From Oikopleura dioica (Eukaryota; Animalia; Chordata): a stretch of DNA of 64,000 nt. Shown here piece after piece: positions 14,633 to 40,980 of this stretch (positions are counted from its first letter, which is position 1; each line of letters begins with the position of its first letter). Both the position numbers and the translations under genes were made by a program. The stretch lies in contig OU015567.1 in the NCBI GenBank assembly GCA_907165135.1, positions 1,550,001-1,614,000 of the forward strand. The letters are read 5' to 3'. The notes under the pieces are model-generated. The model was not told where the DNA came from. It did not search any database and saw only the letters and a program-made list of their open reading frames with translations.

Positions 14633-15429
14633 TTCAGCTGTCATGATAGTGAGCAAATTTTTGCTTATCACTAGGGGAAATCACTAATAATTGAGCTTTT
14701 TTTCTAGCTTAGTAGGGTGGGACTATTATACAGTTTTAGAATCCCCAGAAGCTGGGGATCATTTTGACTATTGATAGTCGGGGGTGATCTCGTACCCTGA
14801 GGGCATTTAGATACCTCCGAAGTCCCAAAATCTGGCCAACTTCGGAAATTGTAATTTTTGAAGCCCTAACTAAGCCTTTTAGAGGCTGCCCACTAGTCTA
14901 GATTGTAGCCCAGGCTCTTACGGTCATTTTGAGCTCAAGAAAAGTAGTGAGGGTGGGGTATCTGGGAGCTAGGAGCTCTTGAAGTTTGGGATCTCGACCA
15001 AAATTAGGTACTTTTTCACAAAAGTACACGATGTGTATCAAAAATGCCTCCCAAAGAATTTTTGAGGATGTTTCTTCATTAAAAAATGTGTCTGAAATCA
15101 TTTGAGGTCATCTGAGGTCATATCGGGTCACTTATCACAATTTTTCAATTTATCACAATTTTTGACCTCGAATGACCTCAGATGACCCCAAATGATTTCA
15201 GACACATTTTTTAATGAAGAAACATCCACAGAAAGTCTTTGGGAGGCATTTTTGATACACATCGTGTACTTTTTGTGAAAAAGTACCTAATTTTGGTCGA
15301 GATCCCAAGCTTCAAGAGCTCCTAGCTCCCCAGATACCCCACCCCCTCACTACTTTTCTTGAGCTCAAAATGACCGTAAGAGCCTGGGCTACAATCTAGA
15401 CTAGTGGGCAGCCTCTAAAAGGCTTAGTT

Positions 15430-15823
15430 TGTAGTGGTTTTCCTACTGTTTTCGCTTCGAAATATGGGATTCTAGCGCGCGTGGTCGACGTAATTATGCT
15501 CAGTGAGCCGTGACGCGCCCAACGCCAAGGCTTTCACTCCATCATACCTTGACAGCTCGCCCCTCTCTATTCCAGCGTTGGCGATATGGCCAACGCCGAG
15601 TTCATACGACCAAGTCTAAGTCCGTGCCACCGATGGGTGGTGTCCTACACTATAAAAACGACTGTACCTCTATAATTTTATCATTCTTTTCCCTGACTTC
15701 ACAGGTATAACATAAAATATAATATATATATTTTATTATTTTCTGCTCACACCTATCAGGGTTAATAAACTTATTCGAGATTGATTCCCGTGTTCCAATT
15801 ATATTCAGTATAAAACCACCATA
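15430..15823 (+). repeat. 5' LTR
   Basis: TGTAGTGG...CCACCATA; reads identical to 19911-20304; contains TATAAAA and AATAAA. Confidence 0.95.
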
Positions 15824-15828
15824 TATTT

Positions 15829-15846
15829 TGGTGACTGAATTAATCG
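15829..15846 (+). promoter_or_regulatory. Putative primer-binding site
   Basis: TGGTGACTGAATT 5 nt after the LTR; the first 7 nt match the tRNA-Trp-type PBS start TGGTGAC, the remainder does not. Confidence 0.55.
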
Positions 15847-17632
15847 GTACGCCCAACAAGAGAGATAAAAAAAAGATACAAGAGATAAAACATCCGTAAA
15901 TTTATCAATGACGATCCGTGAATACATACTTATTTATCATTTTTTATTCGATAAAACGGGCATTGTTTTGAATCCTTAGGCAATTTTACCCGATTTTCTC
16001 GATTAGTATGATAATAAGTTTTACTTCCGGAATAAAGTTGATATTTTTTTAATTCGAAAAACGGAATCTCATTGCTCTCAAATCCGAAAATCGAAAAAAA
16101 TCACCTCAACCGGAAATCAAACTGATGATCAAATCCCTGAAAACGACAACTTAAAATCAATGTGTTCTTCATGATAATTACCAATCAAATGATCGCTTAT
16201 CTCAGAAGAAATCATCAAGGTCGTCATGTTCCAAATCCTGAAAGAAGAAATTCAAAGTTCCTTGATTTTAATTATCATTCCGGGAAGACTTTAGATTCGA
16301 ATTCACATAGAAACTCATTCCAAAGAGGTGCCGAAATTCGTGTACGGTTCTGCTATGCAAATGAACCTCGGCCCATGGAACTGGTCAAACGGGAAATAAT
16401 ATTGCTCAATCTTCGAAATATTTCTCAGCGTGCTACAGAATGATCTATTCTCATTAACAGAATATAATAGGCGCTAATGATCAATCAAGAGTTTAAAGCT
16501 CAAAACATTCACAGCTCTGCTCGAAGCTCGAAAAATCGTCTTTATTGCATCTAATGATATAAAAAGAAGATATCAAAAATTATGAGACGAAGAATTAACC
16601 AAGAAATGATGAAGAAAAATGACGGACATTTCATCACAAGCGCAATACAAATTTGGTTTAAAACAATCTTGCTTAATGGACTCCGATATGCTGCTCATCA
16701 ATTTTGGTTGCAGTAGAACAAGCATCCGCTCAGATGTTCCCGCTCTTCTACTTGCACCTCTTATCAAGAACCGTCAAATGTGCCACAAAAGTGTGCAAAT
16801 TTCGACTCACTCATTGAGGCCACACTTCAATCTTCATCACCAAAGTAAAGCTGAACCTGCTCGTCGTTCAGAACCTCACATGTCCAATAATGTTAACAAT
16901 CCCTGCTCATCAGATGTAATCAGAACGGAAAAATTGAGACTCTGGTAGAAATTATTATCTTACGTATTAACGGAAAGATGATCTATGCTCCAAAAAAATG
17001 CCTTTCCAAATCTAAGATCTTTAGCTCTTTAAATAGGCAAATTAATAAGAGTTGATTTATAAGTGGATCAGAAAGAAGGCTATCTCAGCTCTAAGAAGCT
17101 CTTAGATAGAAACTGGACATACAAATTATGGCTACTGCTCGCAATGCCTGTCTACTCACGAGAAGTTTTTAACTCAAATATCACAAGCTATCTTTTCTCG
17201 TGATCAACTTGTTCTCCAATAATTGCACGTTGACGATTGAAAACGATACTTGCACATTGCTCACGCTAGAAATCATTAGCCAGTGCAACTGCTCAGAAGG
17301 TTTTTCGTCAATCATGGAAAGAGTCAGAACAATCACCTGCTCGTGTGATATACGCGTCTGATTACACCGCTCAAAGAACTTCGTCGCTCGCTCATAAGGA
17401 CAGAATATTCGCTCAATTACCCTTAGAAAAAGTCTTCATATATCAAGTCGATTATGCACAAACTGATTGCAATTAAATATCCATTCACGAAGAAAAATAT
17501 CGGCGTCATATCAGTCTGATTCGACCGCTCAAACGAAAGACTGCCTTAAGAACAGAATTTATCAAGGAAGATGACGTGGCCGAATCACAAGGGAAAGTCC
17601 TAAAAGACGAAGTTAAGAACAAGTCTAAAGTT

Positions 17633-17880
17633 AACTCTCATAAAGATCAACCGCTCCTTGTTGATAGAGATGAGATCATTCCTGCTCAGAAGAATGAAAA
17701 GTCAAAAATTAGCTCTCATAAAGATCAACTGCTCCTTGTTGATAGAGATGAGATCATTCCTGCTCAGAAGAATGAAAAGTCAAAAATTAGCTCTCATAAA
17801 GATCAATCGCTCCTTGTTGATAGAGATAAGATCATTCCTGCTCAGAAGAATGAAAAGATGTTAACGAGTCATAAAGATCA
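17633..17880 (+). repeat. 78-bp coding tandem repeat (about 3 copies) in a pol-tail-like remnant
   Basis: SHKDQxLLVDRDEIIPAQKNEKSKIS repeated; period 78 (17641 vs 17719); in frame with upstream KYRRHISLIRPLKRK. Confidence 0.9.
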
Positions 17881-19263
17881 TAAAGAGCCAAGTGATAGAG
17901 ATGACTCAGCTCACGACAACAATTGGAAAGATCGTCTCCGCTCATGACGATAGTGTTGTCCTGTGATTAGCTGCTCGACTAATCCTTATAATGGTCTAGA
18001 AGTTTCGCTCATAACTCGACCTGTTCACAGATAGCTGCTCGACTATCTCGCTCTCAAATCGTCACATTTTCACGACGTGGTGGTGCTCAGATATGCGTTC
18101 CCATTATCTAGCCACCGTTCACTCATATTTGGATTGCTCGCTCACTCTGTAGTCTAAAGACCTGCTCTCACGACATGCATGTCAAAGGTTTAATTGGTTC
18201 CTCACAACTTCGGCGGTTCAATGCACAACTGGAAATTGGCTCACTAGAATATTAACTCCCCCGATCAAGCTCAAATGGGAATCCAGCTTACTGGTAATGC
18301 TCAACCAGACCGTTATTACGAAGTTTACATGCAGGCCTCTGTGGATTTTTGTTCTCATGACCCAGCTAATGTACTTATTAATTGGCCACACGATAAGTAC
18401 CTCTTTTCTGAACTTTGGTCCAGCCTTCTGCAGATGTTTGGCAATGGGTGCAGTTGCCAAAATCACACACAGAAAGTCCATTTATGAATAATTAGGCATC
18501 TAACTCACAGGTTCCGCTCAAAGCTTTGCTCAATAGCTTTACATATTCTTAAGAATAGGGTTACTACTCTTTATCAATTCGTATTCACGCCCTGCTCGTA
18601 GGCCATATAAATCCCTATTACAATACTTTCACGAAGTTAACCTTGCTCAAGTAACCTATCGTTCTGTTCGCAGCAATTTTGCTCTATTGCTCTACTATTT
18701 TAATCACATGCCTAAAAGTTTATTGGAAGCAATATCGCTCACTTGCTTCAAAGTTTATCACAAGAGAGTATTTGTTATTCACATTTGCTTAAATATTCTA
18801 ATCACAAGCAAATTATTCACAATCTCACAGCTCTGTTCACAGCTTTATATCACTCATAATGTAACACTCTCTTCTTGTTGGAACTCGCTCTTAGTTCTAT
18901 ATATAGTCTGTTAAGTTCTACTAGATTACTGGTCCGATAACAGGTACAAATTAACGATCACCTGCTCGTGATGATCAAATGCTCAATAATTGGCGCTCAT
19001 TAACGATCTCCTGCTCGTGAAGATCATCCGCTCAAAAATAAAAAGGGGAAAGAAGTAAACAAAAAAATACCCATCACAATAGGCCCAATTCACGACTTTG
19101 ACTACTTATCACTGGTCACAAATGTTCACAAGAAAAGACATCGGAATGATCTCACAACGTCCGGAAGAAACACTCGATGGCGCATTCTAGCCTTAAAAAA
19201 AATGGTTCTGAACGGAGTACTGGTTGGTCCAATACTCATTTTTAAAAGAGAAAAAAATCAAAA

Positions 19264-19860
19264 ATGACCTCTCTTCAAAATGATTTCTTCGTGCTCAACG
19301 ACGCCCCTCCAAAGCGGCTCATTCAACGCTTTATCATTCCTGCTCTCTTTGATGTCACCATTCCAATCCACTTCTTACCGAACTCAATTTCAAAAGAAAA
19401 CTTGCAATCGCTGCTCGACTTTTTGCAAGAATTGAAAAACGAAGCTAAGTCCCTTAAAGATCACTTTCACTTTGATATCAACCACCTCCAGGAATTGCTT
19501 TTTGAAAATCATGACAGTTTGCTCAACTGGATAAGTGAGACAGCAATTCTCTATCAGCTTTTGGTCGATAAAAACACTCGCATCGAATTGATGAGACAAT
19601 TTCAAACAATCTATGAAAAACGATATTACACCTCAAGGATCGCTTTCAAATTTCTAGAAGCCGATTCAAAATCGTTTTCCGACCAGCTCGAATACGCGAG
19701 AACTCACATCAAAATTTTCACAAATGATCTTGCTCACAAATACTCGACTTACCGAATCAATCATGCAGAAACTTCACATTCGGAATCTCTACAAGTCGTA
19801 AACTCCATCCAGCACGACTCTCTACCAGAAAATGTTTTCGACTTCATCGAAAATCACTAA
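19264..19860 (+). CDS. Orphan 198-aa ORF at the 3' end of the LTR element
   Basis: Uninterrupted intronless ORF from ATG to TAA, ending ~30 bp before the PPT; no recognisable motif. Confidence 0.65.
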   Translation: MTSLQNDFFVLNDAPPKRLIQRFIIPALFDVTIPIHFLPNSISKENLQSLLDFLQELKNEAKSLKDHFHFDINHLQELLFENHDSLLNWISETAILYQLLVDKNTRIELMRQFQTIYEKRYYTSRIAFKFLEADSKSFSDQLEYARTHIKIFTNDLAHKYSTYRINHAETSHSESLQVVNSIQHDSLPENVFDFIENH

Positions 19861-19889
19861 ATTTCTACGCTCAACGGACGCTTCGCTTC

Positions 19890-19910
19890 AAAAATAAAAA
19901 GGGGAAAATA
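19890..19910 (+). promoter_or_regulatory. Polypurine tract
   Basis: AAAAATAAAAAGGGGAAAATA immediately before the 3' LTR. Confidence 0.85.
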
Positions 19911-20304
19911 TGTAGTGGTTTTCCTACTGTTTTCGCTTCGAAATATGGGATTCTAGCGCGCGTGGTCGACGTAATTATGCTCAGTGAGCCGTGACGCGCC
20001 CAACGCCAAGGCTTTCACTCCATCATACCTTGACAGCTCGCCCCTCTCTATTCCAGCGTTGGCGATATGGCCAACGCCGAGTTCATACGACCAAGTCTAA
20101 GTCCGTGCCACCGATGGGTGGTGTCCTACACTATAAAAACGACTGTACCTCTATAATTTTATCATTCTTTTCCCTGACTTCACAGGTATAACATAAAATA
20201 TAATATATATATTTTATTATTTTCTGCTCACACCTATCAGGGTTAATAAACTTATTCGAGATTGATTCCCGTGTTCCAATTATATTCAGTATAAAACCAC
20301 CATA
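19911..20304 (+). repeat. 3' LTR
   Basis: Direct repeat of 15430-15823, followed by TSD AGTT. Confidence 0.95.
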
Positions 20305-21719
20305 AGTTAGGGCTTCAAAAATTACAATTTCCGAAGTTGGCCAGATTTTGGGACTTCGGAGGTATCTAAATGCCCTCAGGGTACGAGATCACCCCCGACT
20401 ATCAATAGTCAAAATGATCCCCAGCTTCTGGGGATTCTAAAACTGTATTATAGTCCCACCCTACTAAGCTAGAAAAAAAGCTCAATTATTAGTGATTTCC
20501 CCTACTTATCACGAAGTTTCGATTGAACGGAAGTTGTGATGGTCGCGTTTTGTTTGCATAAAGGCACGGACTGGAATCTCTGCTTATTCTTTTGCTTTTG
20601 ATGTTGTTTCGAATGGGTGAAGTCTGTCTTGCAGTAATTTTAAATTTAGGGCGATTGAGATACAGTCGATTGTTCCAGACACTGTTCTTCATGATAAGCT
20701 ACAGTGGATTCGAGTCAGGTAATTATTTCTTATCAATAAAAATGAGCAAAAGAGAGCCTGAAATTTTTATTAATCTACTTTTTTTCAGTCTCCGACAAAG
20801 AATACTGAACACAAAAATGGCCCTGCTAAATCTTGAATGCATGCTGGATCTTGAAGCCCCGATGCCTTACGATGCTGACGATGTCAGTTTCGATCAGTCC
20901 CAACTGTCTTCCGAAGACTACACGATCTCTTTCGATATTCACTCCGAAGGAAAGCGTTCAAAAATCGACGTTGTCGACAGTTTTTTTGACGAATGATGAA
21001 ATAAAGAACGTCAAATACAGCTTTGATATCGTCGACAAGTGAGATGTGTATCGAATGATTGCGCTGCCAAACGCCGATCAAACTGATGATTGCTGAAATT
21101 TTGAAAACCATGCTCGTTCAAGAAAAGTACACCACTCCTAATAGCGCTTGTAAATAAAGATTAAAGTGACATGATTTGATAGTCGAAAATCAACAAGTTT
21201 GGCTGCAGAACATTGATTTCGTAAGCATACCAAGCTGTTCAAAGAAAACAGTTTTTAAACAAAACCAAGGGTAGATTTTTTGCATAAAAACCTGTCAATA
21301 AGCATCGACTACTGTAAAGAAAGCTTTAAAAAGTCCGAATACGTCCGGTTTTGTGGACTTTTTCTTTGATTTTTGGATTTCTCGGCGTTTATTTTCCGTT
21401 TGTGAACTGAGTTTTTTTCGGTTTTTGTCTTACAGTAGCAAAGATTCACAGTAAAAAAAGTCAGTCTGTTTGTAGTTTGTTCTATGTAAAGAATGATACA
21501 CGGTTGTTTGTATACATATTTAATATATAAAAAATTGTTCATACGAAATAGAAAAAACGATGCCGCCAATAATTGCGTCGAATGTTTCTTCATTTTTCAA
21601 TTTACAAAAAATAGCGGTTTCTTTGATAGCAAGAATTACGAACTTAAAGTTTCGGTTCAAGGAGTGTATGAATGTGTTTTAAGTAGCCTTTTTACCTTTC
21701 GGAAGGGGGATTTTGATTA

Positions 21720-38694: not shown

Positions 38695-40980
38695 ATGGAA
38701 TCTGAATATATGATATCAGATCACCCAAAAGAGCTCGACAGGGCGACGATTCATAAATGGCTAGAGAAAATTTTACCTAAATTAAAGCGAACAACGACGA
38801 GAACATCTCAATGCAGACTCATCTCGAGCTTTGAAAGAATCAAGATTGACTGGAAAACTGCTGAACAAGATTGGAGATACTGCGAGGCGAGAAAATCTGA
38901 GGGGGGATGGACGAGTGGGATTGTTCTTGACGATGAAAAGGAATCGTTTGACATGCCATTTGAATTGAATGATTTGCAGAGGGAAATTTTAGCAGATGAT
39001 CCTTCTCTTTTTAACATAATAATTGATCGATGGAAAATCAAAGAAGAAAATGGAAAATGGATTCTGGATGATCTTCTTGAACAAAAAAAGCTTTCTGAAG
39101 GAGGAGAAGCGCTGATTTTTCAAGAAAAATTCGAGAATTTAGAGACTGCAGTTAGAGTTCAAGCCTTTGAACCTTTTCTCTTCACAGAATGCTTCAAAAA
39201 CGAATCGCTTACTTGGGAAATTCATCTCGCAGAAGACTTCGAAAAAGCAGAAGAAGGAGATGAGGGGGAAATTATCCCATTTCATGAAAACATTGTTCGA
39301 CATCATGTCAACGTGGAGTTTTACCATAAATCAGACTCTGATAAGACTGATTGTCTAGGTTGGCTTACAATTATGGAAAAATGTGATGCCGATCTTCGAA
39401 AATTTTTGCGGGAAGAAAGTTTGGATCTTGCAGAAAGAAAATCAATTGCTCATGGCATTCTCAGCGGGATCGAATATTTATCTGGAATTAACATAAGACA
39501 TTGGGATTTGAAGCCTGATAATATTTTACTTTTGAATGGAGTCCCGAAAATTTGCGGTTTCGGACTCGCGTCTGCAGGGAGATTAGGGACAGAAGGAACA
39601 ACAGGAGGAGAAAACTGCCTAGGTTTTGAAAAAATGGGGTACTCTCGTAGGGGAGAAAGATTTCATAATAATGCTCGTGTCTGTAAGTTTCGCCGTAGTT
39701 TCAGATTGCTTTAACTTCTTGTTAGTGGCTGGAACGCCGGGGTTTGCAATTCTTCAACAATTCTGCGTTTCGAGTGAGTATATTGTTGGGATGAACATTT
39801 TTTACTTTCTTTTCTGTGATTGGGTGTCATCATGGACACTTCTTTACAGGCCAATAACTTCTCAAACTGAGTTGGATATTGACGAAGAATTGAAGGTTTT
39901 AATTATTATTCAACGAATTGATTGAAATTTTTCTTTTAAGAAATGTAATGCCCTGTCTTTGAAGCAACTCATGACAACTACTGGCGACATTTCGAAAATT
40001 TTGAGAATATTACGGGAATAATTACCCTGGCCGACAATGAAAAATTCTATGATTTATACATGGACGAGGAAAATCAAAGCTACTATGACCTGTGGATTGA
40101 CGACGAAAATTTAACGACATCTTATCAGTTGTCCTCCATCAAGCAAAGAATGACCAGAAGTGTCAAATTTGAAATGGAAAACTTGGAAGAATACATTCTC
40201 GATCAAAAAATCAGCCAGTTGTGTGTTCCGATTTCGGTTACAACTCTCCTTCGATATGCAATGCGCAGTGACCTTGATTATTTTCCTGAGGGCAACAAAT
40301 ATACTTTTGAGATGATACTCACAACTCTGACAATGATTGTTTATCCAAGAAGCTTGGCTGGACTCAATTTGAATCCGAGAAAAAAGGAAGTCGATAGCCA
40401 ATTTTCTTCAGAAATTGGTCTTTTGCTTGATCGGCTTTGCCATAAAACTTATTTCATGAAGTCAGGTTGGGAAATCATAAAACAAATTGGTGATGACAAA
40501 GTTTTTCAAAAGCGTCCAATAGATTGCAAGTGGACTTTTGGTAATTAGCTAAATTTTCCGATGACATAATAAGAATAAGTTGAGCTGCATGAAAACTTCG
40601 AATTCAGCAGACCTTTGTCTGTAACAGCGGTCATCTTATTCGACACACAGCCGAAAATGCACCAAATGACCATTGATCGAGTTGAAAATGGCGAATACGT
40701 TCTTCAAAACACTGAATTCAAGTATTCAGTAGAAGAGGACGCATACGATACTCCAGTTGTGAGAATCGATATGAAAAAGCCTTACTATCATGGAGAAGGG
40801 AATTTTGTGGAAAATTTGATTTACCAAACTGGTCAGAATGTTCATGACCTCAATGGAATCAAGCGAAAGTATGTTAATGAAATGGCCGGAAACATGGACT
40901 TAAGAACTTGGTATCTACTTCCGACTGGTTTTACCATTCAACTCAGCGATCGAGATTTTATTATTGCAGATTTAGATTGA
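38695..40980 (+). CDS. Protein kinase-like domain plus papain-like cysteine peptidase-like domain; one apparent frameshift at ~40018
   Basis: Kinase motifs LSEGGEA, TAVRV, IRHWDLKPDNILL, ICGFGL, LAGTPGFA; downstream ILDQKISQLCVPIS and MHQMTIDRVENGEYVLQNT. The spliced frame stops at TAA 40019-40021 and continues in the -1 frame. Confidence 0.75.

Follow-up and report, generated by a model that had tools for sequence, protein, structure and literature searches.

A copy of a Tor-type retrotransposon of the Ty3/gypsy group, bounded by long terminal repeats (LTRs), lies at positions 15430-20304 of a 64,000-nucleotide stretch of the Oikopleura dioica genome (GenBank assembly GCA_907165135.1, contig OU015567.1, positions 1,550,001 to 1,614,000), a stretch that we call the window and that was analysed at its full length. 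The copy is env-less, internally deleted and non-autonomous, and it raises the question of why a single tetranucleotide, GCTC, should be so frequent on one of its strands. The original prediction, made from the letters alone, counted about 65 GCTC on the plus strand with GAGC nearly absent, and our recount agrees, both in the zone given below and in the whole interior (15824-19897), where we find 67 against 1. We read this excess, tentatively, as a selected, lineage-specific cis signal on the plus-strand RNA, with the Gag protein as its putative reader and packaging as its possible role.

16400-19880 (+): zone of strand-specific GCTC excess, 66 GCTC and 1 GAGC, consensus YGCTC(R)

Strand bias, coding context and clade

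Base composition alone predicts 9.1 GCTC, and the rest of the window, at its strand-averaged rate, would give 14.4. An order-1 Markov background, which accounts for dinucleotides, raises the expectation to 17.1 ± 4.1 (z = 12), and an order-2 background, which accounts for trinucleotides, to 41.1 ± 6.1 (z = 4.2); the latter is conservative, since it was trained on the motif-laden sequence itself. The complement is depleted, with one GAGC where 10.2 are expected (P = 4e-4). The sites share a wider context, as 53 of the 67 read YGCTC and the next base is usually A or G; the commonest forms are CTGCTC (19 times), TGCTCA (16) and CGCTCA (13).

Tandem or satellite repeats are excluded as the cause. 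With the extra copies of two repeats set aside (two copies of 78 bp, one of 49 bp), 58 sites are left (the earlier estimate was about 55), still with z = 11.2 against the order-1 and 3.6 against the order-2 background. Tandem Repeats Finder reports a 78-bp array of three copies and small two-copy units, with no other arrays, and the spacing of the sites, a proposed check, shows no periodicity: distances of 30-35 nt are weakly in excess (z = 2.5, across loci) and those below 12 nt are excluded. A second tetranucleotide, TCAC (mostly TCACA or TCACG), is also strand-biased, with 50 occurrences against 9 GTGA over 15824-19897, mainly in the 3′ non-coding part. It is partly a variant of the GCTC site, as several GCTCAC sites of a relative of the same subfamily (L001, below) read NNTCAC in the window element.

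The sites of the window element are spread over the three phases (26/22/19), and the intact gag and pol genes of its relatives likewise hold GCTC in all three frames (13/11/5 and 10/8/11 in intact pol open reading frames, ORFs). When these genes are compared with synonymous shuffles, which keep both the protein and the codon usage, pol of L001 has 29 sites against 12.7 ± 2.7, gag and pol of L002 have 19 against 11.4 and 29 against 17.5, and pol of L003 has 32 against 15.5. A similar picture emerges for ORF198, an intact ORF of 198 codons near the 3′ end of the element, with 7-8 sites against 2.3-2.8 (P = 0.003), whereas in control Tor lineages the comparison is not significant. The density of GCTC peaks at 25-30 per kb in the non-coding stretch after pol. 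The excess thus survives a di- or trinucleotide background, does not come from tandem repeats and does not reduce to codon bias in one frame, the three grounds on which the original prediction could have fallen.

Relatives were fetched through ORF198 and pol, and their GCTC/GAGC counts are as follows.

L001: same subfamily, 88-93% nucleotide identity, intact RNase H-integrase part of pol; 74/5
L002, L008, L012: full gag-pol elements; 68-74/10-13 (L002 68/10, L008 74/13)
L003: full gag-pol element; 51/12
L009, L011, L013: short non-autonomous family; 29/3-4 (L009 29/3)
L014: relative carrying a distant ORF198 homologue; 20/3
L016: relative carrying a distant ORF198 homologue; 18/3
L017: copy in O. 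dioica reference scaffold FN653022.1; about 60/6 inside, 24/31 in the flanks
L004: Tor lineage, 56% pol identity; 34/29
L005: Tor lineage, 42% pol identity; 20/23
L006: O. dioica reference scaffold FN653029.1 with a Tor pol at 56% identity; 55/60 over the whole 17.6-kb locus
L007: Tor lineage, 31% pol identity; 17/17

The GCTC bias is a trait of one Tor clade: the proposed k-mer comparison with relatives and host finds the excess in the element and in its clade, and finds none in distant Tor lineages or in host sequence. GAGC stands at 0.10-0.57 of its expectation in the motif-rich clade and at 0.91-1.06 in the controls, and the density of GCTC climbs from subfamily C to B to A as the complement is purged. 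No k-mer is enriched to a comparable degree in the balanced Tor lineages. A different private motif in those lineages was considered and rejected, as TTAT and TTATC top their lists but are mildly enriched in host DNA too and are not strand-specific. The short elements L009, L011 and L013, about 2.8 kb long, constitute another non-autonomous family, independent of the first and derived from the L002-type subfamily, with a truncated gag ORF of 292 aa and no pol, in which the GCTC bias is kept.

Alignment shows that the sites keep their positions. From the window element to L001, 33 of 36 GCTC sites are retained, compared to 0.66 for all 4-mers, and 33 of 41 in the reverse direction, compared to 0.65. 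The same holds from L002 to L001 (13 of 17; 0.33 for all 4-mers), from L003 to L001 (10 of 18; 0.27), from L003 to L002 (29 of 45; 0.47) and from L009 of subfamily D to L002 of subfamily B (10 of 16; 0.41), and when only 4-mers of the same composition are considered their retention is just 0.12-0.35. Sites have also been gained, the shared pol segment holding 25 in the window's subfamily and 17 and 18 in subfamilies B and C; some of the extra sites arose by amino-acid-changing substitutions that also built a stem. Homologous sites that differ do so by many kinds of substitution, which argues against a single editing process. On a conservative, union-based estimate, substitution rates are lower in motif (8.5%), stem (7.6%) and loop (10.3%) than in the rest (12.0%), though not significantly so.

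These comparisons divide the claims of the original prediction. The sites are mostly kept and in part gained. The suggestion that they are scars of a motif-directed rearrangement or mutation process is not supported, since GCTC is absent within 50 nt of the one mappable junction (about 17471-17473), the kinds of substitution are many and the motif lies inside intact ORFs. Nor does this copy give evidence of a code kept while the proteins decayed, as its LTRs are identical over 394 bp and its genes were lost mainly by large deletions.

Display of the motif in hairpin loops

A perfect stem of at least 5 bp with a loop of at most 12 nt surrounds 21 of the 67 sites, compared to 2.9 ± 1.7 when the flanks are shuffled (maximum 9 in 300 shuffles). 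The same test gives 20 against 3.6 in L001 and 10 against 2.9 in L002, compared to 1 against 1.1 in the control L004; the result for L003, 5 against 1.8, is not significant. When short hairpins are considered first and their loops afterwards, GCTC occupies the loop in 21 of 50 in the element and in 12 of 928 elsewhere in the window, and none of the 50 has GAGC in its loop. These 21 calls are 20 distinct hairpins, or 16 once repeat copies are collapsed. Elsewhere the counts are 21 of 56 in L001, 10 of 87 in L002, 5 of 89 in L003 and one per control lineage. All 16 hairpins that were folded place GCUC in the loop, with energies of -3.3 to -7.0 kcal/mol. The GCTC-loop hairpins of the window element are these.

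16851-16871 (+): 6-bp stem, 9-nt loop, -5.7 kcal/mol
17332-17349 (+): 5-bp stem, 8-nt loop, -3.6 kcal/mol
17646, 17676, 17724, 17754, 17802 and 17832 (+): hairpins in the 78-bp repeat
17931-17951 (+): 6-bp stem, 9-nt loop, -6.8 kcal/mol; stem identical in L001
17965-17984 (+): 6-bp stem, loop CTGCTCGA, folded
18029-18048 (+): 6-bp stem of different sequence, the same loop as at 17965-17984, folded
18291-18308 (+): 5-bp stem, 8-nt loop, -5.8 kcal/mol
18520-18540 (+): 6-bp stem, 9-nt loop, folded
18672-18691 (+): 6-bp stem, 8-nt loop, folded
18726-18749 (+): 7-bp stem, 10-nt loop, -7.0 kcal/mol, z = -2.8
18881-18897 (+): 5-bp stem, 7-nt loop, folded
18956-18976 and 19005-19025 (+): two hairpins with loop CCTGCTCGTGA in the two-copy 49-bp repeat, folded
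19311-19332 (+): in ORF198, 6-bp stem, GCTC at the 5′ edge of the loop, -6.0 kcal/mol, z = -3.9
19515-19529 (+): in ORF198, 5-bp stem, loop TGCTC, folded

Loops are mostly of 7-10 nt, with GCTC placed 1-3 nt past the 5′ arm, and the hairpins differ in stem sequence but reuse loops such as CTGCTCGA. The element therefore has what a dispersed signal is expected to have, namely many stem-loops with a common loop motif on varying stems. The hairpin at 18520-18540 has kept both stem and motif in L001, and the loop bases around GCTC differ. Between 17900 and 18060 of the window four GCTC hairpins stand in series at intervals of 30-34 nt, with unrelated stem sequences.

Exposure of the motif extends beyond individual hairpins. 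Local partition-function folding of the window element gives GCTC a probability of being unpaired of 0.405, compared to 0.21 for 4-mers with three G or C (p = 5e-10), and the values against matched 4-mers are 0.37 and 0.19 in L001 and 0.31 and 0.17 in L002, falling along the subfamilies in the order A, B, C. Host DNA has no such effect, and the host sequence of the window has no association of hairpins with GCTC. That GAGC is depleted in just the clade that is rich in the motif agrees with selection for an unpaired GCUC. We infer that RNA is the level at which the motif acts, because the asymmetry lies in the loops and because the genomic RNA is the long-lived single strand.

Anatomy of the element and its 3′ module

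The features of the element, apart from the zone and the hairpins already given, are listed below. The gag and integrase remnants were placed by tblastn against gag and pol of L001, L002 and L003 together with blastn.

15426-15429 and 20305-20308 (+): target-site duplication AGTT, 5′ and 3′ copies, read against the arm of a host foldback repeat that has no insertion
15430-15823 (+): 5′ LTR, 394 bp, ends TG...ATA, 0 differences from 19911-20304; 3 GCTC, 1 GAGC
15824-16344 (+): leader and N-terminal gag remnant, GCTC-poor, 1 site in 521 nt (1.9 per kb); 15887-16030 matches gag aa 8-64 of relatives by tblastn
16345-17497 (+): remnants of gag (16345-16440) and of the N-terminal part of integrase (17128-17473), with frame changes and large deletions; 22 GCTC, 0 GAGC
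17498-17950 (+): pol C-terminal remnant, 89% aa identity to the C-terminus of L001 pol; contains the 78-bp repeat
17621-17857 (+): three-copy 78-bp repeat, two GCTC-loop hairpins per copy
18316-18481 (+): GCTC-free block kept across subfamilies, 77-78% identity to L002 and L009-L013, where its flanks are unalignable
19032-19051 (+): internal copy of the 20-mer of the polypurine tract, identical to 19888-19907; both copies in L001 too
19264-19860 (+): ORF198, intact accessory gene of 198 codons, 7 GCTC, 0 GAGC; 83% identical homologue on L001
19888-19910 (+): polypurine tract adjoining the 3′ LTR, read from sequence
19911-20304 (+): 3′ LTR, 394 bp, identical to the 5′ LTR

Tor elements are Ty3/gypsy LTR retrotransposons of O. 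dioica (Henriet et al. 2015, PMC4402516), and the present copy agrees with them in its two LTRs, its 4-bp target duplication, its polypurine tract and the order of gag followed by pol with reverse transcriptase, RNase H and integrase. The best named protein matches are from O. dioica at 76-80% identity, which places the host in Oikopleura, as O. dioica itself or a lineage near it. Among the intact relatives L001 has the RT_RNaseH, Integrase_H2C2 and rve domains and L002 has RVT_1, RNase H and rve. The window copy differs from many, though not all, Tor elements in having no Env as a third ORF, and no long third ORF at all, with the roughly 200-aa 3′ ORF instead; it differs, too, in its internal deletion and lack of autonomy. 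Tor elements are reported to be expressed in embryos and testis (PMC4402516). In that paper neither ‘hairpin’, ‘secondary structure’ nor ‘packaging’ occurs and we found no mention of a GCTC motif, and a text search of the literature on GCUC loops and Gag gave nothing relevant among its top results.

The identical LTRs indicate a very recent insertion. Since the copy is also non-autonomous and has an intact target duplication, it must have been mobilised in trans recently and must carry the cis signals needed for it, which shows that the sequence retained in this deleted copy suffices for such mobilisation. The host sequence around the insertion is a long foldback (palindromic) repeat (window 14667-15429 and 20305-20509) with arms of 205, 111, 91 and 60 nt that are 93-99% complementary. 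One arm took up the element, and the other still has the empty target site. There are no further copies of the element within the 64-kb window.

ORF198 has no Pfam family above threshold and an exact sequence look-up returned no record for it. Its distant relatives occupy the corresponding 3′ position in other Tor relatives rich in GCTC (L014 and L016). The family (P0001-P0005, P0049-P0051, L014, L016) is small and fast-evolving, with 24-29% identity and a conserved N-terminal block of consensus DFF-L--APPKR--QRF, and its members turned up nowhere but at the 3′ end of Tor relatives rich in GCTC. A scan of JGI metagenomes with ORF198 peptides found nothing, and a DNA pattern made from the conserved GCTC-free block (18316-18481) retrieved loci. 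The protein is predicted to be helical, though its AlphaFold model is poor (predicted local distance difference test, pLDDT, 40). The two 20-mers of the polypurine tract flank an 856-nt module that holds ORF198, and in L001 they stand at about 3669 and 4522. The duplicated tract suggests either a central polypurine tract or insertion of the ORF198 module between tract and LTR in an event that duplicated the tract. The GCTC-free block of 166 nt (18316-18481) contains an 8-bp hairpin with one compensatory change from G-C to A-U and has no reading frame open in every copy; it may serve as an internal promoter or as a structured RNA.

Elsewhere in the window, a 339-codon ORF at 38695-39714 encodes a partial protein-kinase domain whose best matches are O. 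dioica kinases at only 43% identity, which may reflect a diverged Oikopleura host lineage or a lineage-specific paralogue. An Rfam scan of the whole window matched no family and a tRNA scan found no gene.

Candidate readers of the motif

The Gag proteins of all five Tor lineages examined have one C-terminal CCCH finger of the TTP/TIS11 type (spacing C-x8-C-x5-C-x3-H; Gag coordinates 236-1627 in L002, 1845-3203 in L003, 2053-3408 in L004, 4546-5955 in L005 and 667-2052 in L007), with all four ligands invariant. The Pfam family zf-CCCH (PF00642) matches Gag of L002 at 26.4 bits and of L003 at 22.2 bits (gathering cut-off 20.5), and the CCHC zinc-knuckle family is not among the Pfam matches of the five proteins. 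Such a finger contacts about four bases of a single strand. Among solved structures, those of TTP and TIS11d (PDB IDs: 1m9o; 1rgo) come closest, with E = 3e-6 to 6e-6, and their fingers bind UAUU half-sites. The Gag finger shares their spacing, but it is single where the TTP family has a tandem pair, and its proposed target is GCUC instead.

On the reading that we favour, the unit (Y)GCUC(R) would be read on the genomic and messenger RNA of one env-less Oikopleura Tor clade, with about a third to half of the units presented in 7-10-nt loops of weak 4-7-bp hairpins and the others kept unpaired, aided by the purging of GAGC from the same RNA. Spread in dozens over gag, pol, ORF198 and the 3′ untranslated part, the units would offer a protein multivalent binding sites of low affinity, and the putative reader would be the element’s own Gag by way of its single finger. 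The code would mark the RNA for selective packaging and particle assembly, and it would let defective copies such as the window element be mobilised in trans. That the motif is private to a clade favours a reader that the element itself encodes over a host factor open to all Tor lineages. A stronger version, which we consider somewhat less probable, is a private assembly code in which more than 60 GCUC units are each read by the CCCH finger of Gag, so that packaging would be multivalent, lineage-specific and fast-evolving, and in which non-autonomous copies would be parasites of the code.

Several observations weigh against a packaging signal read by Gag on the plus strand. The CCCH finger is present in Tor lineages that have no motif, so the finger alone cannot explain the clade specificity, and the window copy lacks the finger part of gag, while the gag of its own subfamily was not recovered. 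The 5′ leader, which is the classical packaging region of retroviruses, is motif-poor. Only 30-45% of the sites are in simple hairpins, leaving over half outside, and single hairpins are weak (-3.3 to -7 kcal/mol, z from -0.7 to -3.9). No clear compensatory changes separate the stems of the window element from those of L001, with 84 of 90 pairs identical, 2 wobble and 4 broken; the changed pairs are all in 4-bp or weak stems, the strong stems being identical. A comparison of G.U with A.C mismatches gives no plus-strand signal either (8 against 21, where about 11 against 18 are expected).

Several known systems offer partial parallels. The Psi packaging signals of retroviruses are localised structures in the 5′ leader, read by the CCHC knuckles of the nucleocapsid. 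The element resembles them in having a proposed cis signal on genomic RNA with exposed loop bases and a zinc finger, here the putative reader, at the C-terminal end of Gag, but its signal extends over about 3.5 kb and the finger is CCCH rather than CCHC. As the leader is motif-poor, the element is closer to the dispersed packaging signals of single-stranded RNA viruses, as known from MS2, satellite tobacco necrosis virus (STNV) and human parechovirus 1 (PMC6281560, PMC4751978, PMC5431903). There, too, tens of weak stem-loops with varying stems and a short loop motif run across coding and non-coding parts. Those are icosahedral RNA viruses in which binding by the coat protein has been shown, whereas here an LTR retrotransposon is concerned, its reader is a putative one and over half of its motifs lie outside simple hairpins. 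The Chi and KOPS oligomers of bacterial chromosomes are over-represented on one strand with their complement avoided, and Smaug recognition elements are hairpins with a loop motif that occur in numbers inside ORFs, but the likeness of all three is formal only, as the organisms, molecules and mechanisms are unrelated.

Somewhat less probable than Gag, in our view, is a host RNA-binding protein as the reader of the RNA-level code, with a Muscleblind-like CCCH protein as the candidate. Muscleblind (MBNL) fingers bind YGCY (PMC3880588, PMC3103431), and 53 of the 67 sites (79%) are YGCU, a form of YGCY, with a raised probability of being unpaired, as is looked for in MBNL-type sites; CUGCUC also resembles CUG-repeat RNA. 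Such a protein might serve the unspliced RNA in nuclear export, suppress cis- or trans-splicing, or affect the stability of the RNA or its localisation towards the germline, and a clade without env may need another route or regulation. All of the evidence for a selected single-stranded motif applies equally to it, and the Gag finger has no obvious difference between motif-rich and motif-poor lineages. However, a host factor would be equally open to the other Tor lineages of the same genome, which are unbiased, and the host sequence of the window does not associate hairpins with GCTC. In Oikopleura the protein is a hypothetical candidate only, and MBNL itself regulates splicing for the host and has four fingers, spaced differently.

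We give little credence to a role of the minus-strand complementary DNA (cDNA), in which hairpins with GAGC loops would act in reverse transcription by pausing, strand transfer or protein binding. Perfect stems do form alike on both strands, and the mismatch comparison above does not favour the plus strand. Yet minus-strand single-stranded DNA is short-lived relative to genomic RNA, and there is no known process that needs about 60 dispersed sites. The motif, moreover, tracks features of an mRNA, being present in every transcribed coding part and absent from the host flanks.

It is similarly improbable that the motif has no function, having arisen from a mutational or editing bias peculiar to the lineage or from short duplicated units, and was spread by recent amplification. 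Some sites do come from duplications (78 bp in three copies, 49 bp in two), and close copies share sites by descent, but the sites left after deduplication belong to no further tandem arrays and sites stand in all frames of intact ORFs above synonymous expectation. Homologous sites changed by many types of substitution, and sites outlast other 4-mers between subfamilies that are 18-28% diverged. Inverted-repeat flanks together with depletion of the complement are not expected from mutation bias.

Codon usage of one ancestral frame, or amino-acid composition, persisting in decayed remnants is excluded: though the codon usage of the relatives favours CTC, GCT and TCA, the phases are near equal, the densest parts are non-coding and codon-keeping shuffles yield less than half of the observed count (in pol of L001 and L003 and in ORF198), so the original prediction was right that mixed frames put codon usage alone out of account.

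The distributed RNA-level code that it proposed is supported and sharpened by these results, being shared by intact relatives, present beyond codon expectation, kept in position, depleted of its complement and displayed in loops, though they make no choice among packaging, protection from splicing and evasion of silencing.

Dispersed loop-motif signals are a known kind, and what is new here is GCTC, mostly as YGCTC, in the loops of hairpins; to our knowledge such signals are undescribed in LTR retroelements. How LTR retrotransposons choose RNA for packaging is poorly understood beyond a few models, as is the hitch-hiking of defective copies, and a clade-private loop motif present in tens is a directly testable handle on packaging, in a chordate whose genome is very compact and whose Tor elements are active. 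The ratio of GCTC to GAGC is also a simple signature by which the lineage and its non-autonomous derivatives can be recognised in genomes and marine metagenomes. The constraint acts at the level of nucleotides and is strong enough to reshape the choice of codons, and even of amino acids, in gag and pol. The stronger version, if true, would make the element the first example of packaging-signal-mediated assembly among LTR retroelements, and its three reading frames would naturally carry a tetranucleotide code on top of their own.

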